From assembly GCA_028534125.1 (NCBI GenBank), contig CM052850.1:25916001-25980000 (forward strand): a stretch of 64,000 nt of DNA, in the 5' to 3' direction. Origin of the DNA: Lama glama. Taxonomy: Eukaryota. The stretch's first letter is position 1. Every line of letters starts with the position of its first letter. A model generated the notes under the pieces. The model ran no database searches, was not told the origin of the DNA, and saw only the letters and a program-made list of their open reading frames with translations. The translations under genes were made by a program, and so were the position numbers. Shown here piece by piece: positions 1,460 through 55,924 of this stretch.

Positions 1460-4380
1460 GTGAGTAACCTGCCGTGTCTCCCCCACCTCCGCTCCCGGGG
1501 GGCCAGTACAGCCCAGGCACAGGGCTGCAGGGGGTACCCAGCTCAGGATCTGCAAAGATCTGTCACCACTGGGACCTGAACAGAGATGTGGGGGCCCCAG
1601 GAGGGGCCATATGGTCGGTCTGCACACATTGCCGGGGCAGGATGCAGGGGAAGGCCCAGCACACGGCTGCCCGGTGCCTCCCGGGGAGGGTGGGAAGCAG
1701 GTTTCTCATCTCGATGTCTGACACACGCACCATGGGGGTGCCCAGAGCAGCCCTGCCCTCATCCACTAGACACCAGTGCCACCTCCACCTATGAGGTGTG
1801 AAGCACGGGCCAAGTGCCCCTGGGGCAAAGCCACCAGGGGTGGGGGGTGGACAGCTGGGGTGGGGACTCACTCACAAGGAGCCTCAGCGGGTCTGAGAAT
1901 CAGACAGAACTCGCTTGTTCCCCAAAAATTGTGTAATGTGCATATTCAACCAGGTGGTGAGGCCCTGGGTCCCCGAGGTGCAGAGGCGGGAGCAGGTATG
2001 GCTCCATCCATCACCGTGGGCAGTGGCCAGGGGTACTTCAGTCGGGTGCTCAGGAAAGCCACTGGACAGGACAGCCAGCTGAGATCTGCATGCCAGGTCC
2101 TGCACAGTGGTCACTGTGGCCAGGGCAGACCAGCCAGGGCTGGGACTTCTCAGAGAAATGACCCCACCAAGGGTTTTCAAGCAGCAAAGGGTATGATCCG
2201 GTTTAGTTTTAGTATCACCCAGCTGCTAGGTGGTGACCATAGGGTTGCAAAATTGGAAGAAAAGTGACCTTTTGAAGCAAGTCAAATGTGATGACGGCTT
2301 GAACCAGGTGGGGGCACCAAGGCAGAGGCCAGAGGGGCACTGGAGCCAACAGGGCTCCACTGGGGGGCGGGGGCAGCAGCACGAGGCCCAGGGCTTTGGC
2401 ATAGCTGTGCGAGTGGACACTGGTCCATCCTGTCGCTGGCAGGAAGTCAGGGAGAGCCTGCTCCGACCTTCTGACCCGAGACGCCTGCCAGGCACTAGAG
2501 CGGAGCCCAGGCAGCGACTGGAGACATGTGCTGGGGCTCAGAGTGCAGTCAGAGCCAGGGCAGCTCTGGGCAGGACAAGGCCCCCAGAGAGACGGGACCT
2601 GCAGACACCAGATCCGGGAGCTGAGGGAGGAGTCTGCCATAGCCCAGCTGTGTAGACACCAAGGGCAGAGATGTGACCCCTGGACTGGTCAGCATGGAGG
2701 CTACCATGACCCAAACAGTTGCAGCCGAGATGGAAGGGGGTGGGGACAAGCGCAGACAGAAGGGTGTCTCAGGCCACCTGTGGTGGCTGCCCCCACGCCC
2801 ATCTGGGGGCTGCCGGGAGCCCCGGCCCCAGCAGCCTCACCGGGCCTTAAGTTCCCTCCCCTTTGTCTGAGACTTCGGAGCCACAACATCCCAAGAGCGT
2901 TTCACCTGAGAAGTCCTCGTGGGCTAGACGTCTTGTTGACATTGACCCCTAACCCGCATGGGCCCGCCCCAACTGGTGGCCCAGAAGGGCCTTAAGACCC
3001 TCAAGCTTAGTTAATCAGCTTGATCAGACCCAGGTTAACTCCTGACACACCACCACTCTGGGCCTGAGTTTTCTCCCCGTGAAAGGAGTAAAGGTAACAC
3101 CAACCTCACGGCGTCCGTGCAGGACCCCAGGCCCTAGCCGGTGGTCAGCCTGAGGTCAGCTCAGGGCGGGTGGGACCGTGGCATCTTAAGTTTCAGGCCT
3201 GCAGCTGAGGCTCCGGGCCCCGCCCTGTGCTGCTGGCTGCAGCGCTGACCTCGCAGCTATGAACAGAAACCCCCCACTGGCCCCTGGGATCCAGATCCCA
3301 CCTCAAGGCCCCAGCTGGTAGAGAACAGAGCTGCCTCGAGGCCCTCAAATAAAAGGGAACTTGAAAACCAGAAGTAAACAACACAGTAGGGGAGGTCTGA
3401 GCCAGAAAAACAGCAGGCAGAGGAGCGTGAGGGGTGGCCACCTCACCTGACAGACAGGTACTAGGCTCCGTGAAGGAGGCAGAAGCCGGAGACCTGGCAG
3501 CCCCCCAGTGGAGGAGGACCACCCCTTGAGTAACTGCGGACCAGCGGGATGAGAACCTGCATAAGTTAGAACACAATTAAGGAGTCCCAGGCCCAAGTCC
3601 ACGTCAAGGTCAAGACACAGGGCGAGGCCTCTGCAGGCCCTGGGTTCAGCCCCACGGAGCAGGGGCAGACAACAGAGCATCCTTTAGCCTTCTGCTGAGA
3701 ACCAGAGGGCGAGTGAGCCCCCATCAGAGAAATCCTCACCTCTGGCAATCTGACCCCGCAACCCTAAATCCTGTAAACTGAAAAGTCAGAGGCAGCCTGC
3801 TTGGGCAAATGTGCTCCATTCAGCAAATGTTGACCCTTATCAGTAACACAAGGAGCCATCAGGCGTAAGGGGGCTCAGGGAGGCTCTCCATCCTCTGCCT
3901 GCCCAGAGCCACGTTCACCTCTTATCCTCCTGCCCCAGGACTTGGGGACACGTGCACCTGGCCACCCATACGCCGTTTCGTGTGCACACGCTTGTCTTCT
4001 CCACGGGCAGCCAGCTCCACGCCATCCCTCACATCCACGGCCAGTGCACGTTCACGTGCACACGCTCACCTTGACCCGGTCATAGAGAATCACGACATGG
4101 ACCCCAGCCTCGTTCCCCTGGGCGTCCACTAGTGTGTCCTTCTGTGGGCACCCCACAAAGCCTGTGGGGAGACAGCACGGGGGCCATCCTAGGGGCTGCT
4201 CAGACCCCACCCACCTGTCCCCGTGGCATCCTAGAGAGGGAATGCAGGGCTATCCAGGGATAAGGGAGAAGACACAGCCCTCGTGTTGCAGGGGGCCCAC
4301 TGCCCTGCCCCAGGTCGTAGGCAGCCGCCTCTGCTGCCAGGGTGCCCCCTTCAGGCTATGCCTGCCTCTCGCCCCCACAG

Positions 4381-4614
4381 AAGACGTCTTCCCCTGCAAG
4401 GACTGCGGCATCTGGTACCGGAGCGAGCGGAACTTGCAAGCCCACCTCCTCTACTACTGTGCCAGCCGCCCGGGCTCCGGATCCCCCGCCACAGCCGTCC
4501 CCGACGAGAAGCCCAAGGAGACTTACCCCAACGAGCGCATCTGCCCCTTCCCCCAATGTCGCAAAAGCTGTCCCAGTGCCAGCTCCCTGGAGATCCACAT
4601 GCGTAGCCACAGCG
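4381..4614 (+). CDS. ZFPM1: ZFPM1 coding exon (~exon 7), zinc fingers 1 (CCHC) and 2 (C2H2)
   Basis: cccccacag| acceptor and |gtgagg donor. Encodes DVFPCKDCGIWYRSERNLQAHLLYYCAS...CPFPQCRKSCPSASSLEIHMRSHS. Confidence 0.97.
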
Positions 4615-4889
4615 GTGAGGCCCCACACCCCCACCAAAACCATGTGGGCTCGACACACCTGTCCCGGGGTTGCCCACCAGCCGGGGATGTGCTGGGAGGG
4701 GGTCCTCCCACCTGCCCAGGGCACCTGGCCCATCCACAACCACCTGGACAGCCAGCTTGGGGCTGGGCCCCTGCCAGATCCTGGGAACAAGGGCCAAGGA
4801 GGCTGAGTTTAGGGCCCTCCGCATGGCCTGCCGCGGCCCCCGGCCAGCTGGGCTTGGGACCCACCCCCTCAATGGGCCCTGTGTTCCAG

Positions 4890-4985
4890 GAGAGCGCCCC
4901 TTCGTGTGTCTCATCTGCCTATCTGCCTTCACCACCAAGGCCAACTGTGAGCGGCACCTCAAGGTGCACACAGACACACTGACCG
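4890..4985 (+). CDS. ZFPM1: ZFPM1 coding exon (~exon 8), zinc finger 3
   Basis: ttccag| acceptor and |gtaggt donor. Encodes GERPFVCLICLSAFTTKANCERHLKVHTDTLT. Confidence 0.97.
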
Positions 4986-5070
4986 GTAGGTGGGAGCCAG
5001 GAAGGGGTCAGACAGGGGGCGTCTCTGGGGCCCACCCACCCAGGGTCCTGATACCACAGCCTGCCTGCAG

Positions 5071-5217
5071 GGGTCTGTCACAGCTGTGGCTTCATCTCCA
5101 CCACAAGGGACATCCTCTACAGCCACCTGGTGACCAACCACATGGTCTGCCAGCCGGGCTCTAAGGCTGAGATCTACTCACCAGGGGCCGGGCACCCCAC
5201 TGCCAAGCTCCCCCCAG
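5071..5217 (+). CDS. ZFPM1: ZFPM1 coding exon (~exon 9), zinc finger 4
   Basis: ctgcag| acceptor and |gtgagc donor. Encodes GVCHSCGFISTTRDILYSHLVTNHMVCQPGSKAEIYSPGAGHPTAKLPP. Confidence 0.96.
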
Positions 5218-5416
5218 GTGAGCCCCGGGGGCCCCCTGAGGACCGGGGAGGGGGAGGCAGGCTAGTCCGTGAGAGGGGGTTGGTGTCAGTCTCGGCCTTG
5301 GCAGCCACAGCCTTTGCCCAGCGCAGCAATCCCTTCCTGCCCTCCCCCGCCCTCAGGTCTGGCCCAGGCAGGTCCTGCTCCAGCCCTGAAGTGTGGCCCC
5401 TGGGGTCTTCCTGCAG

Positions 5417-7194
5417 ACAGCCTGGCCGGCTTCCAGCAGCACACGGCATTGCACGGTCCTTTGGCCTCTGCTGACCTGGGCCTAGCTACTGCCCCATCGC
5501 CTGGACTGGACAGGAAGGCGCTGGCCGAGGCCACCAACGGAGAGGCCAGAGCGGCCCCCCAGAACGGGAGCAGCGGCGAGCCCCCCGCGACCCCCAGGAG
5601 CATCAAGGTGGAGGCGGCAGAAGAGCCCGAGGCGGAGCCAGGGCCCCCGGCCCCGTCGCGCACGCCATCGCCGCCCAGCCCCAGCCCGGTGCGCGTCAAG
5701 GCGGAGCTGTCCAGCCCCACACCCGGCTCCAGCCCGGGGCCCGGCGCGCTCTTTCTGCCGCAGTTGCCCGCGGCGCCCCCGGCCTCCGAGATCCTGGCCA
5801 AGATGTCTGAGCTGGTGCACAGCCGGCTGCAGGCGGGCGCGGGGGTGGGCGCTCCGGCTGGCCTCTTCGCGGGGGCTCCCAAGGGCGCCACGTGCTTCGA
5901 GTGCGACATCACCTTCAACAACATCAACAACTTTTACGTGCACAAGCGCCTCTACTGCTCCGGCCGCCGCCCGCCCGACGACGGGCCCCCCGCCCGCAGG
6001 CCCAAGGCGGCCCCCGCCCCGCCGCGCGCGCCCCCAGCCCCGCCGCCTGCCGAGGCCGACGCACCGTGCTCGTCGCCGGGCCCCGGGACGCGCGAGGACG
6101 AGGCCAGGAGCGCGGTCACGCCCGAGGCCGAGGCCGAGGCCTGCGGCCGGGGCAGCGAAGGCAGCCTGAGCCCGGGCAGCGGGGCGGACGAGGACGACGA
6201 CCCCCGCCGGACGCTGTGCGAGGCCTGCAACATCCGATTCAGCCGCCACGAGACCTACACGGTGCATAAGCGCTACTACTGCGCCTCGCGCCACGACCCA
6301 CCGCCGCGCCGGCCGGCACCTGCTGGGACCCCCGGGTCCCCCGCGCCCGCCGCGCCGCCGGTGCGAACGCGCAGGCGCCGCAAGCTCTACGAGCTGCACG
6401 CGGCCGGCCCCGCCCCGTCGCCGGCCGGCCCCGCCCCTCCCGCTGCGCCCGGCCCCTCCTCCACGCCGCCCGGCCCCGCCCCCACGTCGCCCGCGGCGCC
6501 GGCGCCGCGGCCCGGAAGCGGAAGTGGAGGCGGAGGTGGAGGTGGAAGCTGCTCCGATCCTGCCGAAGGCCCCATCGACCTGAGCAAAAAGCCGCGGCGC
6601 CAGACGCCAGCCGCCGCCACCCCGGGCCCCGCGCCGGGCCTGCCGGCCCTGGCCGACTACCACGAGTGCACGGCCTGCCGCGTGAGCTTCCACAGCCTAG
6701 AGGCCTACCTGGCGCACAAGAAGTTCTCGTGCCCCGCCGCCCTGCGCCGCCTGCGCGCCTCCCCCGAGGACCCGCCCGCCGTCGTGTGCCCCTACTGCCC
6801 CCCGAACGGCGTAGTCCGCGGCGACCTCATTGAGCACTTCCGCCTGGCGCACGGCCTGCTGCTGGGCAAGCCCCCGGCCGGCCCCGGCGCCGAGGCCCGG
6901 ACGCCCTCGCCCGCCGCCCAGCGCGACGGCCTCAACGGCCAGGACCTGCGGGAGCCGCCCGCCGGCAGCCCACGGCCCGGCCCGCCGCCGGCCCCGTCCC
7001 CTGAAGCTGTGCCGGCGCCCCCCTCCCACTCGGACAAGGGTGTGCAGACCCCCAGCCAGGGGTCAGCGGCCCCCGTGCCCAACGGCAACCACAGGTACTG
7101 CCGCCTGTGCAACATCAAGTTCAGCAGTCTGTCCACCTTCATCGCCCACAAGAAGTATTATTGCTCCTCGCACGCGGCCGAGCACGTGAAGTGA
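5417..7194 (+). CDS. ZFPM1: ZFPM1 terminal coding exon (~exon 10), zinc fingers 5-9 and CtBP-binding PIDLS motif
   Basis: ctgcag| acceptor at 5416. The frame carries CFEC..HKRLYC, CEAC..HKRYYC, PIDLS (6571-6585), CTAC..HKKFSC, CPYC..HFRLAH and CRLC..HKKYYCSSHAAEHVK, ending at TGA 7192-7194. The exon is very CpG-rich. Confidence 0.98.
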
Positions 7195-12930: not shown

Positions 12931-14427
12931 ATGGGCAGGCCCCTCCTAAGGCCCCCAGGACACTTCTTTAGGCTGATTCAACACATTCGAGACCTCCACC
13001 TTCAGGAGGTGGTCAAACCCAGACTTCTCGCCTTCCTTGGCAGTACTGCATGGCCACAATATAAACTTGACAATGGCAGCCAATGGCCCAAAAATGGCAC
13101 TTTTGATTTGCACATTCTCAAAGATGTCGACAATTTCCTCCAGTGCCATGGGAAGTGGTCAGGGGCCCCCATCTCCAAGCCTTTTGGTGCCTCCGATCTC
13201 GTCGCTCCCTCTGCCGGTCCTGCTCTCCCCACCAGACCCCCTCCTACGTGAACCCCCTCCTCGGCAGCCCCAGCTCCCCAAAACAAAAGCCGACCCCGAA
13301 AATCCTCTCACCCCCACCAATCCTTCCTCATTCGAATTCAGCTGCAAAGACAAACCCCCTCCTTCTCTCCACAACCCCGACCCTCTCCGCCGAGGCCCCC
13401 CTCCCCCCCCACACATGAGATCTCGCACCCAACCGTCAGCCCGACTCCACAACCCCTCCGTGAGGTGGCCGGCACCGATGGCATCCTCTGAGTCCGTGTC
13501 CCCTTTCCCTCTCCGACCTCTCAACCATTGAAAACGATGCGGGTCGTACTCGGCAGACCCTGTCACCTTCCAGAAAAGAACTGCTGTATCTCACCCGGCC
13601 CTGTGGCCTGGCCTGGCGTGACATTCACTTCCCTCACGTCTCCCGCGAGGACCGGGGCGTATCTGGGTGTCAGCTGAGGGCCATGCTGCCACTCTCCGCC
13701 AGCAATGCCCCAACAATCACCCCGGCGGCGGCAGCGGTCCCCAAGACAGACCCCGACTGAGACTGTCAGGCAGCCTCCCTAGGCCGCCCAGGGCGTGCCC
13801 ATCCCGTTACCTGCCTCCTGACAGGCGTGGGAAAGGCGGCCCTGAGAGCCGTTAATTATGAAAAGGGCGAGGAGATCACCCAAGGTCTGGACGAAAACCC
13901 TGCCCTCTTCCTTCCTCGTCTTGCTGAGGCCACGCAAATTATACCGGCCCCGACCCCGATTCCAGGGAGGGCCGCGCTTACCTTCATCTACATTTCACAT
14001 CCCAGTCCGCCCAGACATCAGGAAAAACCCACAAAAACCAGAAGGCGGTCCGCAAACCCCTCAGCGAGACCTCATAAAAGTGGCCTTCAAGGTCTCCAGC
14101 AGCAGAGAGGAGGAGGGAAAAGCCTTAAAGGGAAAGCGCGGTCAGGCCAAACGCCAGGTGCTGGCGAAGGCCCCACAAGAAGGGGCAGCGTCTTCCCAAA
14201 GACAAAGGACCTGGGGGCCCCCGGCGCCTGCCTCAGGCGCGGCAAAACTGCCCGTCGGGCAAGCGCTGCCCCAGCCCTAGGCCCCCACCAGGGCCCTGCC
14301 CGCCCTGCAAGCAAAAGGGACACTGGAAACTGGACCGTCCTCGGCAGTACCCCTCTGGCCTGAGCACACCCCGATCCCTGTCCACTCTGCCGTGACTCAG
14401 CTCCTCGGCCGGGCCACTGAAGACCGA
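12931..14427 (+). pseudogene. gag: ERV gag remnant (MA, CA/MHR, NC with two knuckles)
   Basis: ATG at 12931, MA-like motif to ~13160, MHR ~13850-13930, knuckles ~14228-14270 and 14297-14338 (CPPCKQKGHWKLDRP). The junction reads GAAGACCGA at 14419-14427 where GAAGACTGA is expected. Multiple frameshifts. Confidence 0.88.
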
Positions 14428-17400
14428 CAAGCCCCGGGGTCCATTGCCCCACCCCCACCCCTCACAATGAGCCGCGGGTAACTCTGACGGTGTCTGGTAA
14501 ACCTGCATCATGCCTGGTGGACACGGGCCACCTATCCTGTTTTACCAGAATCCCAAGGACGTCGCACAGGTCCTCCACCTCTGCTGTGGGCGCTGACGGC
14601 ACTTCTTCACGACCAGGGCAAACCAGCCCTCCTCCGCTCCCTACGCCCAGCCCAGCTCACCCACGCCCTCCTAGTGACCCCGCTTGCCCAGCCTCCACTC
14701 TGGGCTGAGAGGCCCTCCGAACGCTCATGGGGGGCGATCCATCTTTACCCCTCCCACTTTGATCTCCTCTGCTGTCAAGAAACACCCCAACTCAAGCATG
14801 CCTGCTCGGTCTCTCCTTCTTCCTGAGGCGACCCTGGTCACCCGGGGTGCATCACAGCCCGTGGTCACCTCCCACCACACCCCCACCTCGATCTCCCTCC
14901 TAGACCCTCAACCACAGTCTGTCAGACACAGCTCCCTCTGGCCTCCAAGGACTCAGGGCCTAAAGGCATAATCGCTCGTCGTCTGAGAGCCGGGCCCCTT
15001 CGGCCGACAGTCGCTCACAGCACCCCTATTCTCGCCATAAAAGATGAATGGGACCCACCGTTTGGCCCAACCAAGCTATGTCGCCATCCACCCACCGTGC
15101 CTAGTCCCTGTACCTCCTCTCACATGTCCCTCCTCAGGCCACTCGCTTCCCTGTCCTTGACCTCAAGGACGCCTTCTTCACAGTCCCCTGAGTCCCTCCT
15201 CCCCGGAGCCGTTCTCCTTTACCTGTCCCGATCCAGACACCACCCGGTCAGCACAGCTGACCTGGACAGTCCCCGCTTATTTGGCCAAGCCTTAAGCCCT
15301 GGTCTCTCCCTCCCTGATCCGTCCCCTCGCCTTCTCTTACGATACGTGGACCGCTTACTTCTATGCAGTCCCTCAAAGGAACGCTCCATTTCCCATACTA
15401 CCCAACCACTAAACTTCCTCGCCGACCGCAAGTACCGAGTGACCTCCACCAAAGCTCCAGTGTCCCGGCCACAGGTCACTCATCCTGGGCTCGCCATTAC
15501 CCCGTCACTCCAGGCCATTCCCGAAGAACGGAAAGCCCTCATTGACACGTCGCCTCTTCCAAGCTCAAGACCCGAACTCCTCTCCTTCTTCGGCCTGGCC
15601 AGCTACTTCAGAATCTGGACCCCCAGCTTCAGCCTCCTACAGAACCCCTCTCCCAGGCCGCGGAGGGAGAGCCGCAAGAACCCCTGGACCCGACCACACC
15701 CATTTCTGGCCCAATCAAAACACTAAAGCGGGCCCGAACGCATGCACCCACCCGAGGGCCCCCCAGCCCTACAAAGCCTTTTCACCTCCACCTGACTGCC
15801 ACTCAGAGCCTGCCCTGGTGTCCTGGGCCAGACACTCGGAGAGACTCCCTGCGCAGTGGCCTGTCGTCGTGGCCGGATGGTCCCCATGCCCGAAAACCCT
15901 CGGTGCCGCTGCAGCCCTGGCAGCCGAAGCCAGAATGTTCCCTCTTCGCCAGCCCCTCCTTGTGTCCTCCTCACGCAGTTCACAGACCTACGCGGCCATC
16001 GCGCCCTTCTCGACCTCTCTCCCTCTTGCTTACAACAAATACACGCCACGTTCTTCCAGGACCCTCCCTGTCCCTGCAGCACTGTACCCTCTTAACCCCA
16101 CCACCTTGTACCAACTCACTCGGATCCCTTACAACCAGCCACTCACGCCTCAAGGTGCTAGACTCCCCTCCCTGTCTCTTCTCTCACCTCTCTGACCTCC
16201 CCTTCCTGAGGCCCCTACCTGGTTTATCGATGGGAGCTCTTTCCAGGACCTTCGTCCCCAAGCAGGCTATGCCGTCATTACACAGGACACCGTCCTCAAA
16301 GCTAAGCCCCCGGCCCCTCGCCCTACCTCACAGCAAGCTGAACTCATCACACTTACCAGAGCCCTCACGTTACCAAAGGTGAGCAAGGAAATATCCACAC
16401 CCACCCTAAATGTGCGTCCCGTGCCATTCGCACCCACGCCGCCATGTGGCAGGAAGGGGACTCCACACACACGGAACCCCGTCTCTAACGGAAAACTGAC
16501 TCACAGACTCTCAGAGGCAGCCTTCCTTCCAGTGGCCGAAGCTACGCCCCTTTGCAAAGGACGCCCAGCCCCAGAAAACGACGCAGCCTGAGGCAGCGCC
16601 CCTGTAGAGCCAATGCAGAGCGGGCCGCAGGGAGGCCGTCGAGCCCCAGAACACACCCCAACTCCTCCCCGCCTTTCCACCAACCGAGCCCACACACACC
16701 CGCGGTGAGCAACACGCACGTCCAAGTCAGGGCTGCCCTCCAGTTCGGGCATGGTTCGTGCTCATTCCCGAAATCGTGCTCCCCAAATCACAAGGAAGCC
16801 AGATCCTAGGGCAAATCCACTCTCAGCTGCCCTCCGGTCACCCCCCACCAGACAGCAACCCTGCATTTCCTGTCCCCCACTTTAAACCACCTTACCGCGC
16901 GTCGCTCTTGCCTGCACTTGTTCCAGAACACCCCCTGAGGAGCCGCTAGGCCGCCAGCGGCTCCTACACACCAAGCACAAGGACAGCTCCGTGGACAAGG
17001 CCGGTGGCTGGCTTTCACCCACATGCCTCCCGACAAAAGATTGAACTATCTTCTGACCTTAGTTGACTGCTTTGCTGGCTGGACTGAGGCTTTCCCATCC
17101 GCATCAGAAAAGGCCCAGGCTGTTTCTTCAGTCTTGTGACAACACATCGTCCCCCCGACTCGGACTCCCAGCCAGCCCACAGACAGCGGCCCAGCCTTCA
17201 GCTCCCAGATCCCCCAACAGCCCATCAGAGCCCCGGACACCTCCCGGAAGGTCCGTACCCCTCACAGGCCCCAGTCCTCCGGTGGGGGGGGCAATGCCCT
17301 GCTAAAACGGCGTTGAACTGAACTGGCTCTAGAGCTAAAACTCTCCCAGACCCGACTTCTTCCGTTAGCTCTTCTTAGACTCCACATGCTTCCTCAGAAC

Positions 17401-24204: not shown

Positions 24205-26069
24205 TCAGCGGCCGCAGGAGACGCTAACGCCCAGGTGCCCACTGCACCCAGCCCCTCTGTCGCCCCGCCTACTCCCTCATTCCCGCCTGCCTCCGCCCCA
24301 CACAGGTGCCCCACTGCGCAGGCCACCTTTGGGCCACCTCTGGACACCAGACTTCCTCCCAAGTGTCCACGGAAAATCTGCTTTAATGAGCATCACAGGA
24401 GCCCAAGGGGAAAATAATCTCAAAGGGCATGCGGATGGGTCAGGGCCCCAAGCCTTTGTCCTGATCGCAGAGGTGCGCCCACAGGGGGACAGGTGACTGC
24501 ACCTGAAGGTCTCTGGGCTCAGGGTCCTCATCGCAAAAGGGGGACAGGTGGAGGTCCCCCCGACCAGGTCATCACTGGGGTAAACGTGAGTCCTGCGTGC
24601 ACTGGGCTTTTCCCGGGCCTGGGGCCCCTAACCGTCAGTAGGGACCACCAGGAGGAGGGTCCAGTGGACAGGCCAGCAGGGCCCCTGGTCACCTTAGGTG
24701 GCCGCTGTCCTGGCACTGTCACGTACAGTGGCCATGCCCACTTACCCATGCACTCTCCCCTCACTGGTGGCTCAGGAGGATTGACAGCCACGTGCACCTA
24801 TGGAGGGCCAAGCATCAGTGCATCCAGCTTGGGCGCCACAGCCAGGCCGGGTCAAGGCACCGCTTTCCCCGACCCGCGTGGGGCTGGACCAGCCAGCACA
24901 CAGCAGGCCGCCTGTTGGGCCCTTGACCCAGGAGCCAGCGCTGCCGGGTCCTGGCTGCCCCCATGAGGCCCTCTGCCCAGGCTCTGCTAGCGCTTGAAGT
25001 CACAGCAGAGGTGACGACTGCTGATCTGGGTCCCAGCCGCCATTTTGAACCCACTTCCACAGGGAGCCTGGTCCCTGGGCAGTGAGGGGAGGAAACGGGC
25101 CTGCAGTTCTGAGAGCCATGGGCACCCCCCAAGCTGGCCCAGAAACACATCTCGCTGCTGGGTGGGGGCACTTTCTGCCACCTGCCCCCTGAATTGTCAG
25201 TGCCTTTGGCTGCAGTGTCCACCCAGATAAGAGATGGAGGTGGAAGCCTGCCCACACCCTGAACTCCCCCGTGGGCCCTGGATGAAGGGGGCACTGGTCA
25301 AAGCCGGCCTCACGGGAGCAGAGCTTGACGCTTGGGGGCGAGGGGCTCAGGAACGGCTTCCTACTTCTGGCTGAGGTGCTGGAAGAAACACAGCACTCTG
25401 CTCTGTTGACGACTGTGACCCAGGCTGAACGCAAAGGGAAGGAGGCAGGAGGCTTAGGTACCGGCTGTCCTTAGCACATGTGCGTGGCCAGTTGGAGAAG
25501 ACCTCCAAGCCAGTGGGGGTGCAGCATGAGGTGTCTCTGGGTGTCGGTGGTTGGAGCTGGGTGCCCTTTCTGTGTGGCACCATCCACCTTAGAAAATGCC
25601 ACATGCCAGCTCTGCCCACAGCCAGACTGACAGGGTGTCACCAGAGACTGGAAGCACATTCCTGTAATACCTGGGAAAAAGTGCTTGAAGTGGTACGTAG
25701 GAGCAGTGGAAGGTCATAATTCTACACCGATGGAGGCTAGGGTACCCCCAGCCTCCCGTTCCTCACCTCCCGCGCTTCTGGAGGCGGGAGCACTACCCTT
25801 ATGGAACCCCCCTGGCCAGGACACCCTCAGGTCCTAGCTCGCGGGGACAGAAGTCCCTGGGGAGCTGGGAGCTAAGAGCCACTGGCAAAGGGGTGTCTGC
25901 CCCTCTCCTGGCCCTGCCAGCCGCCAGCAGACAGGACCCAGCAGGGAGCAGACCAAGGGCGGCAGGAGGAGCCAGGCAGGAGGAGGGCAGCCCTCAGACG
26001 ATGCTGAAACCAGGCCCCTGCTGCTGGGGTGGGCGCCCAGCTGCCTGAGGGCCCGCGACCCCACTCTTG

Positions 26070-28426
26070 CCCATCTGCATCTTCCGGGGGGGGGTCTCTC
26101 AGAACCCACCGTGGCTGGTGGTGGTGAGGCAGGCTGGGCGCCTCCGGGCTCCTCTCCTTGGCACCCGCATGACCGCCCTGGACTTCTGGGACCTGAGGCA
26201 GTAGGTGATGGGGCTGATGGGGCTGATGGGGCTGATGGGGCTGTTGGTGTAGACTCAGGTGCGGCAGAAGAGGAGGACCCAGGGGTCCTGGAGAGGCTGG
26301 GCCCCCAGGGGGCTGAGCGTCCACAGGATGGCAGAGAGCAGCACGACCACCACTCGCACCTCGGTGACCTGTGGGCTGGCGGGGCTGTGGAGCCACTGGT
26401 GCTGGGCCCACCGCATGGCTGGTGGCCAAGCAGATGCCACCAGAGCCACAGCCATGGCTGCTGCCCCAGGACGAGGCTGCTGAGTAAGAGATGAGATCGT
26501 TACTGAGATAATCACACGACTGCTGCGTGTCCACTGGGCGCTGTGCTAAACGTTTCCCGTGCAGAGACCCAGGGCCGGCATTCAAGGCTGTGCTGGTTGA
26601 TACGCTCGTGAAACAGTCCCACCTCCGGTGGTAAATACCCATGCCCTGAGCCTCTTGTGCACCCTGCCCCCCAGGCCTCTCAGGTTCCCAGCGAGCAAAG
26701 ACCGGATGCTGGGAACAGGGCCCTGGGACCCTGATGCCGCAGTGAGGCCCGGGTGGACAGCACCGCTGCTGGCACTCTGGTTGCCTCCCCTGCACCGGCC
26801 TGCCCCCCAGTGTGCTGTTGTCACCTCCACTTGAAGGACGAGAAATCAGGGGCTCAGGGGGAAGGAGCACACAGCACGCACACCATGAACCAGCTTCTCC
26901 TGCAGCCTGCTCGTGCTCACCACTGTCCCAAATGGCCCCACCTGCACCCATTCTGGTGGGGGTTGGGGGGATGTCTGTGAGGGGGACGTCCAGTGCGGGG
27001 GGCGGGTGCTGTGCCTGCACCCACACCTCTCCCACGTCCCCCATCTCTGGCAAACCGGCCCCTCCCATCCCAGGAGACCTCGTACCTGCTTCCTGGGAGA
27101 AGGGAAGCCTCTGGCCCGGGGGCAGCTGCCGGTCACGTCCCCACCAGGCCTGCGGGGCTGCCTCTCCCAGGCTCCTGCCTCCCACCGGGCCTCTCTGCCC
27201 GCATGCTGGCACCTGTGCTGGGGCAAGTGGGCGGGGGGAACCACGGAATAAGATCCTTGCCATGAGCCCGTAGAGGGCGGTGGCCACTAGCAGGGGCGTG
27301 ACAAAGAAGACCGTGAAGTCCAGCAGGTAGATGGGCAGGCAAAGGCCGCGGGACACCGTGTAGCTGCACCACAGGCCCCGGTCCCCGTCCACATCGAGGT
27401 CCACCAAGAAGAACCAGAGCAGGCAGTAGGTGGACGTGGCCCCCTAGACGCCTGCCATGATGCGCTTGGCCTGCGCCAAGGTGCACACGGTATGTGCCCT
27501 CATCCGGTGGCAGATGGCGATGTACCTGCGGGCCACAGGGTCATGTGACCCACCCACCTGCCCATGTGATTGGGCCACGGTGGGGACACTGACCCCGCTC
27601 GGCCAATCAGATTCCCCGCTGGGGACCAAATGTGGCCTCGATGGTTGAACTGGCCCTTTTATAGGGACCTGGAGGGCCATGACCATCTGGGAAGCGAGGT
27701 GGCCATGCTGAGGGAGACTCAGGCTGCAGAACACAAGGAGCCAGTCTTGAGAGGAGAGGGCAGAAGGTGAATCGGAAGAGCAGAGCTTGTCTGCCTCTCG
27801 GGGGTACAGATCAGAGCCAGAAGAGCCCCGAGAGGGTGCCCAGTCCACTGCCCACATTCCGGGCAGGGAAACTGAGCCCAGAGAAGTGCAGGGTGCCTTG
27901 GCATCCAGCAGCAAGTCAGCAGCTGTGGTGAGACGACAACCTGCTTCCTGGTGCCTGCCCCCTCGCCCACCCTGGATGCCAGTTTACTCCAGGGTCCCAC
28001 AGGCTCCCCCCCATAAATGGGGAGCAGCCTCAGTTTACCAAGGATCACGGCCAGGAAGCCCTGGCATGCAGGAGGGGCCGGGAGCGCCGATCTCTCCACG
28101 GTGAACTCCAGGACGGAGCAAGAGGAGGCACTGATGCCCAGGAAGCCAGTGTAGCCACAGACCCACTGCCCAGCCAAGCTGTGGGAGACGATGGGCAGCC
28201 CTGCAGCCACCAGTACGGCAAGGTCAGCCAGGGCCAGGCGAGCCAGGTAGCAGTCGGTGGGTGTGTGTATGTCCTATGTGGTCAGCACCACCAGGACCAC
28301 CACGGCATTGCCCGCAATGCCCACAGCACACACGAGGAGCAACAGGAAGACCGAGGCCACCTTGTACACGACAGGGCTTGGGACAGTGTCCCTGCAAGCC
28401 AGGGGCACCTTGCTGGGTGTTTCCCG
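26070..28426 (-). pseudogene. TRHR2: TRHR2 (thyrotropin-releasing hormone receptor 2) unitary pseudogene; three coding-exon remnants at 28426-28092, 27525-27086 and 26368-~26070
   Basis: Minus-strand translation: [58 protein letters not shown]|[102 protein letters not shown]..SQK. This matches rodent TRH-R2 as recalled, and rodent Trhr2 lies between Zfpm1 and Zc3h18. Stops at 28274-28276, 27444-27446 and 26255-26257. The 3' end is approximate. Confidence 0.93.
26207..26242. repeat. 9-bp tandem repeat (GATGGGGCT)x4 inside TRHR2 exon 3
   Basis: Four perfect copies at 26207, 26216, 26225 and 26234. Confidence 0.95.
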
Positions 28427-29354
28427 GCCTCTTCCTGATTTCTGTGTTGGCTGTGCAGGCACTGGAGGGGGAGGGGCTCCAGGAGGCATCCACTGCCCGC
28501 GGCCGGGCCTCCGTGAACACCGGCCTGCTCTGAGAGCCTGGCCCCGGGGACACGCAGGAACCCGGCACTTGGGACGGGACTGCTCAGTCAGGTTGAGAGA
28601 GGACCAGGAGTGCCCGTTCTGGGCTCTGCTGTAAATAGTGTCTGCGAGTCAGCCACTCTTCAAGCCTCAGTCTCCTGGTGCGTAAACACAGACAACGGTC
28701 GGACCTAAGCCGTGAGCTCGCGGGGAGGCTGAACCCGGAAGAACGCCCGGCGAGCCCTGGCCCAGCTGCCCTTTGTCGTTAGGATGCCGCACAGCATCTC
28801 CAAGCCCAGCTAGCTCAGCTGTGAAACGGGAGAACTGAGGCACCGGCTTCTCGGGGACGTGGCGAGATTCCCACGAAACGGCGGGGCCTGGAAAGTTCTG
28901 GGCCTGGAGGCTGGTTCTGGGCCCATGTCTGCTATTACTGGTAACATTAAGGCTTCAGTCATGCGGGGCCTGTTTCCCCAGCTGCCGGCAGCTGTGTGAA
29001 CTGAGTGAGACGGAAGTGCCCGGGGGCCCCGGGAGCCCCAGGCCTCGGCCCCTACAGGCTCTGCTCCTGATCCGGGAAGAGCCAGCCAGCCTCCCACCTG
29101 TCGTGGTTCCCGCGCGGTCCCACACCACGCACAACCCACCCCTCTGCCCTCTGACCCTGCTGGTGTCACTGGCCAGAAGGACCACATGCCAGCTCCCTCA
29201 GAGCCTGGACTCCCACCTCCGCAGCCACGCCCCCCATCAGCTGCACGGACCCAGGTCCCGAGCAGAGCCGAGGCCCCTGCAGCGCGGCGGAAGCGGCGCC
29301 CCCTGCAGCTCCCACGAGTCAGGGCAGGGCTGGGAGAGAAGCGGTGGCCCCAGG

Positions 29355-35322: not shown

Positions 35323-35619
35323 TTGGCGACAGTTAAAAATGTTTAAGCTCTGACATTTAAACTCAGCATCTCAAAAAAATGATAAGATTTTGTGTTGAAC
35401 TGATTGTATTTGATAAAGTAAGAGCTATTTAGTCGCCCGGAAACAGTCTAAAATGCTTAGGCTTTGAGACTTAAACCTCAGTATCTCGAAAACAGTCAGT
35501 TTGTGTTGAACTGATACGTGGAATAGAGTGAGGAGCTAGCCAATCCCACGGGAACAGTTTAAAATGCTTCATCATTGATCTTTAAGCTCATTTCTCGAAC
35601 AGGATTAACTCTTTGCTGG

Positions 35620-36560
35620 GCGCGCACGCCCCGTGGCGCGGGAGCTCCTCAGGCTCGCCGGAGAGATGAGCTCGGAGCCCCGGGATCGCGGGGTCCCGCC
35701 CGCAGCGCCAGTCGCCTGGCGCGAACCCGCGCTCGCCCGTCACGTGGCCGCGTGGCGCGGGCAGCCCTCCCCGCGGCTCATCGGGCGGTGCGCGCGCTCA
35801 GAGACCCGCCCCCCGGGGGGCGGGGCCGAAGGCGCGCCTACGCCGTGGCGGGCTCGGGCGGGCGCGCGCCGCGGGGGCGGGGCCTCGCGGAGGCGGCAGC
35901 GAGGAGGCCGGAAGGAAGCAGGCGGAGGGCGGGGCGAGTCAAGGAAGCCCGCCGGGCCGCAGGACAACCGTCGCGGCCTGATGACGTCGCACAATGGCCG
36001 GCCCCCGAGGGTAGTGGAGCCCGTTTGTTCCGCCCGCGTCGCGCCTCAAGTCGGAGCCTGTGAGGAGCGGAAGGACCGAGGGACGTCTTCCCCGCACCGC
36101 CCCAACCCCCGCGGAGCCGTGGCCCCCCTCCCCGTCCTCGCGCTGAGGTAAGCGGTGGCGGCGGCTGGGAGGCCGGGTCGGCGGGAGGAGGAGGCCGAGG
36201 CGGCCGAGCGGGGAGCGTGGCGGCGGCGCGGAGCCGAGGCCCCGGAGCCTTGCCGCCTCCGCCTCCGGGGAGCGCTCCAGGCTGCCCACCGGCCGAAGCG
36301 TGGCTCTTGAGCCCCTGGAAGGGGAGGCCGACCCAGGCACGATCCCGCTTCCCGTCCGCGACGACCTGGCCAGGGTCCCTGAAATCTCCTCAGCCCAAGC
36401 GCCCGGCGGCTACCTCCGCGTCCTGCCGTGGGGTTGATTCTCTCAAAGCTGTCATTCCTCTTCCGGGACATTCGCGTAGCGCTCTTTGCCGCCTACAAAG
36501 ACGTGGGGCGGCAGAGGGAGGCGCGTGGATTCGTTCTCCGAGCTGGGGATAGGCTCTTCG
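35620..36560 (+). promoter_or_regulatory. CpG-island promoter of ZC3H18
   Basis: Very dense CpG and no TATA box. E-box GTCACGTGG (35739-35747), several GC boxes (GGGGCGGGG ~35817, ~35874), ETS site CCGGAAG (~35908), CRE-like TGACGTC (35982-35988). Confidence 0.9.
36040..36147 (+). other. ZC3H18: ZC3H18 non-coding exon 1 (start approximate)
   Basis: Strong donor GAG|GTAAGC at 36147/36148 inside the CpG island, upstream of the ATG-bearing exon. The TSS cannot be fixed from sequence alone. Confidence 0.7.
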
Positions 36561-42381: not shown

Positions 42382-43080
<699 letters not shown>

Positions 43081-46000
43081 TAGGCTGGATTGAGAAACTG
43101 CCAGTCGGTAGCTGGCGGGAGTTCCACAGGCCCTCCTCGCTCATCCGTCTGGTCGTATTAAAATTCTGGAGTTTTTTAACAGGCAGTAGTTTTCACCCTT
43201 TGTCTTCACTGTCTCAGAGTAGTACTTGAGTTAGCAGTCAACTAGAACCTCTGTGGGTTTCAGTTCTTGTTATTTTCTTGAGGCTGAAAAACTCCTTCCT
43301 TCCAGTTTCGTCTGTTCTTTTATTCATTTTTTTCTTTGCCCCATGGCCTCTTGTCTGATGCGGGCCCCAGCTTCTATGGAAGTATCCCTAAAAAGGCCCT
43401 CACTGGATAAAATGGGGTTGCGCATCAGAACACCTTGGGTTTTGACCAAGCTGTCACATCCTTAGAACTTACTTACATTCACCTGGCCTTCAGGGTAAGG
43501 AGAAGGTAACTGGTAATGATCATCTTAGATGTGGGTTGTTTGGGTTTTTATGACAGATGATCCTGTTGAAAGAACTTTAATCACCATCGTTTAAGAGGTT
43601 GAGTTTGGGGGGCAGAGCCTGAAGCCCTACTGAGTAAAGCTTGTACTCAAAGGAGGGGAGAGGGAGGCAGAGCAGAGGGAAAGGATCTGGAGTGTTAAGC
43701 ATCCTGGGGGGCGATCCTGGTTGAGAGTCATTGTGGAGAGAGGTGGGCCTGAGGAGTACCCCTCAGGAGGGCCCTGTGTTAAGGAGGGAGAGGTTGCTGT
43801 CCAGGCGCGCAGCTGCAGCTTCACGGGCAGCTCTGTCCTGGAAGGTGAGGCAGTGCCGCACAGCCACGCGTGTGCCTGGTCTTAAAAGACGTGCTTGTCG
43901 GTTCACAGGGACAGAATTTGTGGGGCATGCGTGTGTAGTTAAAGCTTAGGGGTTTAGATACTCTCATAACTTAAGTTTAGGAGGTGGTCTCACGTATTAA
44001 TAGCCTTTGCTTAATATTATCTTATTGAAAGTGGTATTGTCGAGACCTGATCATGCAACTGTCCTCAGGTTTTGCCAGCTCCAGCTCCTTTCCAAGCTCC
44101 CTTTAGAAAGTTAACCCTGGCAGCAGGGTTGCCAGAGGGAAAGAGATGCCGAGAGACTCCAGTGAATCAGTTTGGGTGGAATTTGGGAGTGGAAGGTGAA
44201 GTCACTGGTTGAGGTCACCTGTGAGTTTGATTTTTCAGTTTACGGAGAGAAAAGCCACTAGGAAGGTGAGGGGTCCCGGCAGCGGGGGGCGCCGTGGCCG
44301 GCGGTTCTGGGCGCCGTGTGTCCCGTTAGGAAGGCCCAGCTGCAGATGCTGCTTGCTTCCGCTGCTGAACGCATGGTAGCAGACTTCGCCTCCTCTGCTG
44401 CCAGTGTTCAGTCGCAGGGACCTGAGCCTCGCTGCGCCGTGGCGTTCCTGCCGCGTCCAGCTTTGTTGGTCTCCCCCGGGGCAGCATTGGAGCCCCCTTG
44501 CCCACCGACCCCGCCTGGTTGGCCAGTCGAACGGACTTGTGCCTGCCTGGCACCTCCAGTGAGGCCCCCACAGCCCAACTGGAACAGCTCCACTCAGCTC
44601 TGCGGGCCCCGCGGTGTGCCAGGCTCACTGTGACGCACTGGGGGTGTAACTGTCCCCCATCCTTGGGGACCGGTGGGCCTGCACGGGGCTGGGCACTGTG
44701 AATGGAGACTTTGGCCTTCGCAGGAGCGCACCTGCCTTCCAGGAGCTCCTCTGGGTTATTTTTGCTCTTGCCCGTGCCTGTGACTGCGGGCTCCTCCACA
44801 CCCTGTAATTACTGGCCTCAGTGTCACCTCCTTTCTGTAGGCCTCCTGCCTACCGCCCCTGGCTCTCCTGTTAGATCTGCCTGGGCACCGTTGTGGTGCT
44901 TCCACACACAGTCTGAAGTAACCAGGCCATTAGTGCGTGTGTCTCTGCTGCTTCCCCGCACCTGCTCCTCCAAGAACACGAGTTCCCGAGTCCGGCCCCT
45001 GTGTGGCTGGCTCCCTCCATCCCTAGCACCTGGCACCTTGGAGGCAGTGCTCTGGGGCATGCCAAGTTGAGTGCCATCGAGATGAGGCATGGTGGTGGGC
45101 GGGACGTCTGCACTGGAGAGCCTTCCGAACAGAGGGCAGTCTGGCACTGCGCGTGGGTGACCAGCACCAGCCTGAGCCTGCGTTGGCAGAGCCCGGCGTA
45201 GACACGCGTCAGCTGGCGTCTGAATCACTGCTGCTGGGCCGTCTTCCTGCTCTCTCTGTCCCGGTTCTGGCCCTTCCTTCCCTGTCAGGATCCCGTGTAT
45301 CCACAAGCATACACTTGTATCTTTCTTTCCCAAGATGGAGAGGGAACTAGAGGTGTGTGCTTGGGTCCATGAACAGCCTGCTTCCTTCCAGCAGGCTTTG
45401 GTCTAGTCCCCTTTAGTTCAAGTCCCTGCCAGGTAGCTTCTGGTCCTAGTGGGAAGTACCCATCCCAGAGGGCTTTTTCCCTGTCACCTTCCAGGTATCA
45501 GAGGTGAACTACCTGGATGTTTTTGTGAGGAGGAAATGTGTAGTTTAGTGTATACCTCGAAGATGTACATTCACGGAAGCCTCTGAGCTTCTCCGTGCCC
45601 AGCAGCCCCTCCTGCCTGTCTGCCCATTTCCTGCCCATAGCATCAGGCCCAGAATTGCTGGGAACAGCAAGCTGAGTGGAAGAGTCTAAAAGGCCCTGTG
45701 ATTTATTCTCCTCTTAACTCAGAAGCACTTTTCCTTGTAGGTTAGGGTTAGATTGGGGGTCACTGGGACAGGTGAACTGGTTTGGGAGGGAGTCACCCCC
45801 ACCCTCCTCAACTCTTCTAGTCTGCTGAGAGTTTCCGTGATAATGACATCAATTTGTACAATAAACCCTTGAAATTTTTTTGTCTAAACCACAGTTTATA
45901 ACTCAGGCCTTGAGTTACCTTTATATGTTTTTTGTGTGCTGCCCTCAGAAGCAGATGCCTTTCTGGAAATGCTACTTCCTTGTGCGGTGGGGATGGGATT

Positions 46001-55482: not shown

Positions 55483-55618
55483 TTTTAATTTGTTTTGTTT
55501 TGGGGGGTTTAGGGGGCGGTAATTAGGTTTATTTATTTTTAGAGGAGGTACTGGGAATTGAACCCAGGACCTCATGCATGCTAAGCATGCACTCTACCAT
55601 GGAGCTATAGCCTCCCCC
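55483..55618 (-). mobile_element. tRNA-derived SINE (camelid Vic-1-like)
   Basis: Same family as the 53376 copy. TSD ttaagttg(t/g)ttt at 55471 and 55619. Confidence 0.85.
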
Positions 55619-55819: not shown

Positions 55820-55924
55820 TTGGGGTGTGTGTGTGGTAATTAGGTTTATTTATTTTTTAGAGGAGGTACCAGGGATTGAACCCAGAACCTCATGCACTCC
55901 ACCACTGAGCTATACCCACCCTCC
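55820..55924 (-). mobile_element. tRNA-derived SINE (Vic-1-like) with an internal deletion
   Basis: ggtaattaggtttatttattttttagaggaggtaccagggattgaacccagaacctcatgcactccaccactgagctataccc; lacks the tgctaagcatgca segment present in the 55483 copy. Confidence 0.8.

Follow-up and report, generated by a model that had tools for sequence, protein, structure and literature searches.

Here we describe what is very probably a unitary (i.e., unprocessed and single-copy) pseudogene of TRHR2, encoding the subtype 2 receptor for thyrotropin-releasing hormone (TRH), still at its ancestral locus, flanked by ZFPM1 and ZC3H18, in the genome of a South American camelid, the llama Lama glama. The DNA analysed, here termed the window, is a stretch of 64,000 nucleotides (assembly GCA_028534125.1, contig CM052850.1, positions 25,916,001 to 25,980,000 of the forward strand) that is free of N runs and has a GC content of 0.594 overall and 0.64 around the TRHR2 locus. 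All coordinates below are those of the whole window; the gene lies on its minus strand, and its three exons were analysed separately throughout. The locus cannot make a receptor: it is interrupted by premature stop codons and by a frameshift in the third intracellular loop (ICL3), eight residues are gone from the third transmembrane segment (TM3) and seven from TM6, the NPxxY motif is broken, and the first intron has no GT donor. We propose that TRHR2 would have been disabled on the camelid stem and would have drifted neutrally since; with TRHR2 inactivated, all TRH signalling in these camelids would run through TRHR1 alone, as in humans. In the literature searched, no printed description of a camelid TRHR2 pseudogene was found.

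Structure of the gene remnant

Reading of the sequence together with tblastn searches delineates a TRH-receptor gene remnant at 25994-28489 on the minus strand, comprising three exon blocks, which cover all seven TM segments, and two introns:

28092..28489, minus strand: exon 1 remnant, encoding the N-terminus and TM1-TM3 up to the Glu-Arg of the ERY motif (translation; tblastn match 28471-28091 with the horse protein)
27526..28091, minus strand: intron 1 (566 nt), between the ER and the Y of ERY, with an intact acceptor AG at 27526-27527
27086..27525, minus strand: exon 2 remnant, opening with YIAICH and encoding ICL2, TM4, the second extracellular loop, TM5 and ICL3 (tblastn match 27527-27078 with the horse protein)
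26369..27085, minus strand: intron 2 (717 nt), between RKQ and V ahead of TM6, with intact donor GT (27084-27085) and acceptor AG (26369-26370)
25994..26368, minus strand: exon 3 remnant, opening with VTEV and encoding TM6, TM7 and the C-terminal tail (tblastn match 26371-25997, up to the last horse or bat residue)

A first-pass annotation of the window, made from the letters alone, had recognised three minus-strand exon remnants of a TRH-receptor gene, with their introns and at their ancestral locus, and the tblastn matches (E down to 1e-39), the two introns and the flanking genes bear this out. With both introns kept and the parent locus occupied, the remnant is not a processed pseudogene (retrocopy). 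The end that had been set at 26070 falls short: the tail continues to an ancestral stop codon at 25994-25996, right after a terminal ...GFSIV that aligns with the ends of the horse, bat and deer proteins, and the TGA that had appeared terminal is a premature stop at 26099-26101, the fourth of the gene.

Affinity to TRHR2

A protein search with the stop-free stretch that follows the TM4 stop in exon 2 recovered 66 matches, every one a TRH receptor or TRHR-like protein. When all 66 were compared to the window with tblastn, they gave high-scoring segment pairs (HSPs) on the three exon blocks, the sole exception being P0044, which has none on exon 3. The TRHR2-like protein of the horse matches exons 1, 2 and 3 with 61%, 53% and 49% identity (E = 1e-39, 8e-39 and 1e-21), and the rat TRH-R2 comparison that had been proposed as a check likewise yields matches on the three blocks (52%, 69% and 43%); on these E-values the three exon matches lie far beyond chance. 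In a PDB search only the solved human TRHR matches strongly, with chemokine or bombesin receptors next at E of about 0.01; the TM6 piece found no match in the PDB.

The subtype was examined by scoring the same pieces with phmmer against the solved human TRHR (i.e., TRHR1) and against 23 proteins of the TRHR2 clade:

Piece E1b (exon 1): human TRHR 60.4 bits; TRHR2 clade 59-79 bits (the 20 full-length proteins of the 23), 14.5-31.5 bits for Ovis and two Capra predictions
Piece E1a (exon 1): human TRHR 22.9 bits; TRHR2 clade 25-46 bits (Capra ibex, no match)
Piece E2b (exon 2): human TRHR 63.8 bits; TRHR2 clade 77-95 bits (Bos, 57.5 bits)
Piece E3a (exon 3): human TRHR, no match; TRHR2 clade 7-30 bits (Rangifer and Callorhinchus, no match)

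On every piece the TRHR2-clade scores exceed that of human TRHR, barring a few short or broken ruminant predictions; the low E1b scores belong to the Ovis and two Capra predictions that are devoid of much of TM3. The parts specific to the subtype, viz., ICL3 and the tail, also align: downstream of the frameshift the highest ICL3 scores (23.5-32.6 bits) are those with horse, bats, deer and reindeer, those with horse, bat and deer reaching 31-33 bits, and the scores with sheep, ibex and one rodent are lower; the tail aligns through the last residues (...FSxV) of the horse, bat and deer proteins. The one rodent aside, the proteins matched by ICL3 and the tail are laurasiatherian TRHR2-like ones.

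A phylogenetic tree was built from the three exon rows and 46 of the 140 available TRHR2-clade proteins, namely those of all 25 mammal species and of 21 other vertebrates; two wombat isoforms and a further 92 non-mammals were set aside. The eutherian clade that contains rat TRH-R2 (support 100/100; 23 rows) takes in all three exon rows, and those of exons 1 and 2 fall further within a set of horse and ruminant proteins (95/93; 10 rows). The end branches of the exon rows are long (0.9, 0.47 and 0.56, the median being 0.12). These results support the assignment of the copy to TRHR2, as the first-pass annotation had proposed, and on sequence similarity it is closer to TRHR2 than to TRHR1.

The relic might instead derive from TRHR1, TRHR3 or another class A receptor. 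The tree is made of TRHR2-clade proteins with no TRHR1 or TRHR3, all of the 120 matches listed of the 1116 obtained with the horse TRHR2-like query being of that clade; TRHR3 is said in a passage of PMC7587745 to be present in dogs, pigs and cattle, and a solved TRHR1 is the sole strong PDB match. Against these stand the higher TRHR2-clade scores on each piece (the few defective ruminant predictions aside), the match of ICL3 and the tail to TRHR2-like proteins up to the last residue, the placement of the exons with rat TRH-R2 in a clade that also holds the Bos protein they resemble, and the linkage to ZFPM1 that is common to the TRHR2-like genes of four species (see below). According to passages in PMC7587745 and PMC2117022, birds have TRHR1 and TRHR3 and are devoid of TRHR2; no bird protein occurs among the 66 exon-2 matches or among the 120 matches listed of the 1116. 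The exclusion of TRHR3 is indirect, because there is no TRHR3 in the tree and it rests on this absence of birds among the matches. Taken together, we regard descent from any receptor other than TRHR2 as very improbable.

Two oddities were encountered among the proteins compared. An eel protein labelled 'trhr2' groups with a crocodile protein on a long branch in the tree, probably as an artefact, and a 591-aa Silurus protein scores about twice as high on the pieces of exons 1 and 2, as expected of a gene model that is tandem or fused.

The lesions

We count nine lesions, namely four premature stops, one frameshift, three in-frame insertions or deletions (indels) and the absence of the GT donor of intron 1, with at least one premature stop in each exon remnant. 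In the order of the gene, these and the state of the start position are:

28424..28426, minus strand: CGG at the position of the initiator Met of rat TRH-R2 (in tblastn, rat residue 4 aligns at 28417); not counted among the nine
28274..28276, minus strand: premature stop 1, TAG, in ICL1, where 12 of the 13 aligned proteins with a residue at this column have Arg and Muntiacus has Gln
junction 28144/28145, minus strand: in-frame deletion of 24 bp (8 codons) in TM3, removing the equivalent of Cys98 (numbering from the alignment with 7x1t)
28090..28091, minus strand: intron 1 donor, AT in place of GT, its phase inferred from the split Arg codon (AG-G) implied by the protein alignments
27444..27446, minus strand: premature stop 2, TAG, at the conserved Trp of TM4 (translation and alignments)
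27233..27238, minus strand: +1 frameshift in a C-run in ICL3, with ten nucleotides facing three codons of the orthologues and tblastn HSPs in two frames
about 26317/26318, minus strand: in-frame deletion of 21 bp (7 codons) in TM6, removing a P-Y-R stretch that includes the equivalent of Tyr282
26255..26257, minus strand: premature stop 3, TGA, at a Cys of FCRTC at the start of TM7
26206..26247, minus strand: tandem array of a 9-bp unit (4.7 copies, 96% matches), adding 6 codons (18 bp) inside NPxxY
26099..26101, minus strand: premature stop 4, TGA, in the C-terminal tail (translation and alignments)

At the frameshift the reading frame changes between 27243 and 27232, and the new frame downstream reads AHLPQ..., like that of deer. 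The NPxxY region with its tandem array now reads SPISPISPISPITY. The stops in ICL1, at the TM4 Trp and in TM7, the ICL3 frameshift, the two deletions in TM3 and TM6 and the dead donor had all been reported in the first-pass annotation and recur here at the same positions; its list was accurate as far as it went, with the 9-bp array overlooked as a third in-frame indel. It had further held the start codon to be lost. The CGG at the rat Met position agrees with this, and the bat/deer-type start position, which aligns further upstream than the rat Met, is also without an ATG. However, an in-frame ATG lies at 28487-28489 and the predicted horse protein likewise begins upstream of the rat-type start, because of which we do not count the start as a firm lesion: it is not clearly lost.

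The damage extends to the ligand-binding site. Tyr106, Asn110, Tyr282 and Arg306 are given as the direct TRH contacts of the receptor in a passage of PMC9485831. By alignment, Tyr106 is replaced by Phe and Asn110 by Ser in the camelid copy, Tyr282 is deleted and Arg306 is kept, i.e., three of the four classical contact residues are lost.

Lesions in independent sequence

It could be argued that the animal carries an intact gene and that the lesions are errors of one assembly. The locus offers error-prone contexts, being GC-rich (0.64), with a homopolymer of C where the frame shifts and with a short tandem array, and the DNA runs compared are all flagged as possible sources of the assembly. Even so, at least 0.98 of the sampled words are contained in 14 DNA runs spanning four organism labels and seven studies. 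Three runs (X4, X5 and X11), each under its own organism label and from its own study, have single contigs across 26000-28500 that show 0, 0 and 1 differences (27295 G>A), respectively, over 2501 bases. The lesions are also nine in number and separate, most of them being substitutions or else indels longer than 18 bp, and the sequence of a divergent relative has no indel at the TM3 deletion (see below). Since contigs under three organism labels carry the same sequence, we consider assembly error extremely unlikely; the lesions are real, with good support short of raw-read proof.

Age of the loss and the divergent relative

Further evidence comes from a library labelled as RNA ('reproductive system metagenome'; X16), which yielded six short contigs of depth 3-6 that are 95-99% alike to the locus. 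Given that they are only this alike, we attribute them to a relative. Exon 1 is covered by these contigs, as are a large part of intron 1 and parts of exon 2, intron 2 and the tail (stretches at 27999-28500 and 27475-27860 of the window among them), with no splice joint in any contig. The signal is likely host DNA carry-over or unspliced RNA and constitutes no evidence of expression. This bears on whether the locus might still be used, either through a non-coding or truncated transcript or as a polymorphic pseudogene with intact alleles segregating. In its favour, RNA-labelled libraries contain 0.06-0.23 of the sampled words and one of them has the six contigs on this stretch. Yet those contigs belong to a relative, are shallow, include intron 1 and lack a splice joint; the same words are found in all 14 DNA runs; and any peptide would stop after TM1. 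We therefore consider continued use of the locus highly unlikely.

The relative provides a second lineage in which the lesions can be followed. Its exon-1 contig, about 4% divergent, differs from the window by 23 substitutions and 0 gaps, and thus the 24-bp TM3 deletion is common to both lineages. The ICL1 stop is untouched by the 20 differences that are listed of these 23, making it probable that the first stop is also shared. A cluster of four differences in the relative lies at 28148-28153, beside the junction of the TM3 deletion. Of 336 sites compared in exon 1, 18 differ between the two lineages; for the covered intron the count is 16 of 425, the exon being no slower to change. In exon 1 there are 12 non-synonymous differences over 243 sites and 6 synonymous ones over 93, giving a ratio of non-synonymous to synonymous differences per site (pN/pS) of about 0.77. 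This substitution pattern agrees with neutral drift in each lineage, the numbers being small.

None of the lesions of the window is seen in the aligned predicted proteins of ruminants, horse, bats, rodents or afrotheres. No camelid TRHR2-like protein occurs among the 66 matches or among the 120 listed of 1116, in a database that includes alpaca and dromedary proteins. In the simplest history, as we infer it, inactivation took place on the camelid stem, once camelids had split from the other even-toed ungulates and before the relative at about 4% divergence branched off. As horse, bats, rodents and at least deer retain full-length predictions, the camelid loss is supported as independent of that in primates. 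Accordingly, the first-pass reading of an old loss, possibly separate from the human one, agrees both with the proteins clear of lesions and with the relative's sequence having no indel at the TM3 deletion.

A crude lesion clock, based on the four stops and the four indels that fall within about 1.2 kb, would place the inactivation, as an order of magnitude only, at a few per cent to about 7% of neutral divergence, which would be about 2-4 times the per-lineage distance that separates the window from the relative. Dating from the branch lengths of the tree was rejected, since the model inflates neutral replacements at conserved sites.

Several points weigh against the reading of the locus as a unitary TRHR2 pseudogene disabled on the camelid stem, beyond the composition of the tree and the indirect exclusion of TRHR3 already considered. 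The position of exon 3 within Eutheria lacks resolution. In Pfam, exon pieces match 7tm_1 (PF00001) at 26.4 and 13.4 bits, under the cut-off of 30.5; such scores are expected because the pieces are fragments, and the family identity rests on the TRHR matches. The six stop-free pieces gave, in Pfam, these sub-threshold matches and one chance DUF match only, which is uninformative as to the subtype. The sequence support consists of contigs rather than raw reads, from three DNA runs that are all flagged as possible assembly sources, and the upstream ATG leaves the start available. In the relative, 3 of the 23 differences are unlisted, the TM4 stop lies at contig ends, and the contigs miss the frameshift and the exon-3 lesions. 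The pN/pS value derives from only 18 changes. Finally, the evidence on copy number is confined to the 64-kb window and the protein matches.

TRHR2-like copies in ruminants

The state of the ruminant TRHR2 copies is possibly the more interesting thread of this work. By alignment, the Ovis and Capra TRHR2-like predictions have much of TM3 absent and HPIIY in place of NPxxY. At the equivalent of Arg306, Bos and Muntiacus have His and both Ovis and Capra have Leu; Bos also has His at that of Tyr106. The Odocoileus prediction appears intact. From these residues, the ruminant TRHR2-like copies may be genes in decay, or may encode receptors that have ceased to bind TRH. A TRHR-like protein of a cattle hybrid (P0066) falls in the TRHR2 clade beside sheep and goat; the cattle TRHR3 mentioned in PMC7587745 and the TRHR2-clade cattle protein may be different genes.

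Such observations raise an alternative to a camelid-specific loss, viz., that TRHR2 was already disabled or relaxed in the ancestor of the even-toed ungulates, with camelids the most decayed. Long branches lead to the camelid and ruminant sequences (0.087 and 0.15), several ruminant predictions look damaged in TM3, NPxxY and the contact residues, and no pig or whale protein is found among the matches listed. On the other side, no window lesion is visible in any ruminant protein, though predictions cannot reveal stops that annotation has skipped, and the full-length Odocoileus prediction has ERY, NPxxY and all four contact residues. We judge this wider loss unlikely, though less so than the alternatives above, and retain inactivation on the camelid stem.

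A related scenario, which we put forward tentatively and as the less probable course, is a piecemeal loss of TRHR2 across even-toed ungulates: relaxation on the cetartiodactyl stem, disabling in camelids before the split of the Old and New World lineages, and erosion of bovid copies that are still annotated as proteins although TRH-contact residues and NPxxY are gone from them. If true, TRH-R2 signalling would have become dispensable early in the order, and the genes of deer, sheep and cattle would be dying or not TRH-binding.

The locus and its surroundings

The remnant adjoins a gene recognised on either side:

4134..7194, plus strand: last coding exons of ZFPM1 (FOG1), the upstream flank (ORFs, i.e., open reading frames, with C2H2 fingers)
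42388..43083, plus strand: first coding exon of ZC3H18, the downstream flank (ORF; match to PDB 9t3x_C at 53.3 bits, residues 84-129)

The 641-aa ZFPM1 ORF is 100% identical to the Vicugna pacos protein over 96% of its length, with those of whales and pig at 82-85%, which marks the animal as a South American camelid. The PDB label of 9t3x_C reads zinc finger CCCH domain-containing protein, the name being incomplete; from its N-terminal sequence we take the ORF at 42388-43083 to be ZC3H18. A protein atlas search with this exon gave no usable match. The neighbourhood is presumably that of mouse Trhr2, which we take to lie between Zfpm1 and Zc3h18. In all four species that could be compared (Onychomys, Meriones, Chrysochloris and Pristimantis), the TRHR2-like and ZFPM1 proteins are encoded on contigs of equal size, which lends partial support to a TRHR2-ZFPM1 linkage. 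Thus, the TRHR2 remnant sits at a conserved locus, next to ZFPM1 and ZC3H18.

Other elements of the window concern neither gene remnant nor receptor:

13827..14360, plus strand: ORF with a weak Gag_p30 match (20.1 bits, E = 4.9e-4, under the cut-off of 27.4)
35575..36151, plus strand: ORFs of high GC content, their translations rich in Arg, Ala and Gly, some 6 kb upstream of the exon with the ZC3H18 start codon
53419..53491, 55543..55614 and 55861..55919, minus strand: tRNA-model matches (35.6, 48.8 and 30.4 bits, respectively) in the expected ZC3H18 introns

The ORFs neighbouring the Gag_p30-like one (13037-16382) have no Pfam match; the region 13037-16382, which lies between ZFPM1 and the pseudogene, probably represents what is left of an old and broken gamma-retrovirus-like element. 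The GC-rich stretch probably represents a CpG-island promoter with a non-coding first exon of ZC3H18, and the three tRNA-model matches are most likely heads of tRNA-derived short interspersed nuclear elements rather than tRNA genes.

Comparison with known systems

The loss described here adds a well-preserved and datable case to the patchy loss of TRHR2 in mammals, and opens no new question. It is of use to annotation, in that the locus would otherwise be missed or mis-modelled, and bears on the choice of model species for TRH-R2 pharmacology.

The closest counterpart is the rodent TRH-R2 (rat Q9QWW3; mouse Trhr2), which is orthologous, with the three coding blocks aligning at the identities given above and membership of the same eutherian clade. 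It differs in being a working Gq-coupled TRH receptor, as described in sections of PMC7225337 and PMC9485831, whereas the camelid copy is broken. The human TRHR (TRHR1; 7x1t, 7wkd) belongs to the same family, shares the common TM motifs and is the only strong PDB match; however, it is a paralogue at another locus, with lower scores on every piece and with ICL3 and the tail unmatched. Passages of PMC7225337 and PMC9485831 also describe humans as being without TRH-R2. Losses of TRHR2 in primates, chicken, fugu and 'many mammals', from which independent losses were inferred, are mentioned in parts of PMC2117022 and PMC7587745: in primates, chicken and fugu, as in camelids, the same gene is gone and TRHR1 kept, but the camelid event is separate and falls inside Laurasiatheria. 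A parallel outside the family, noted in a passage of PMC2117022, is the NPBWR2 pseudogene of rodents, where likewise one of two receptors for the same peptide was lost and the other is presumed to take over, though the genes and lineages are different from the camelid TRHR2 case. The loss of TRHR2 in camelids is a new instance of this known, patchy pattern.

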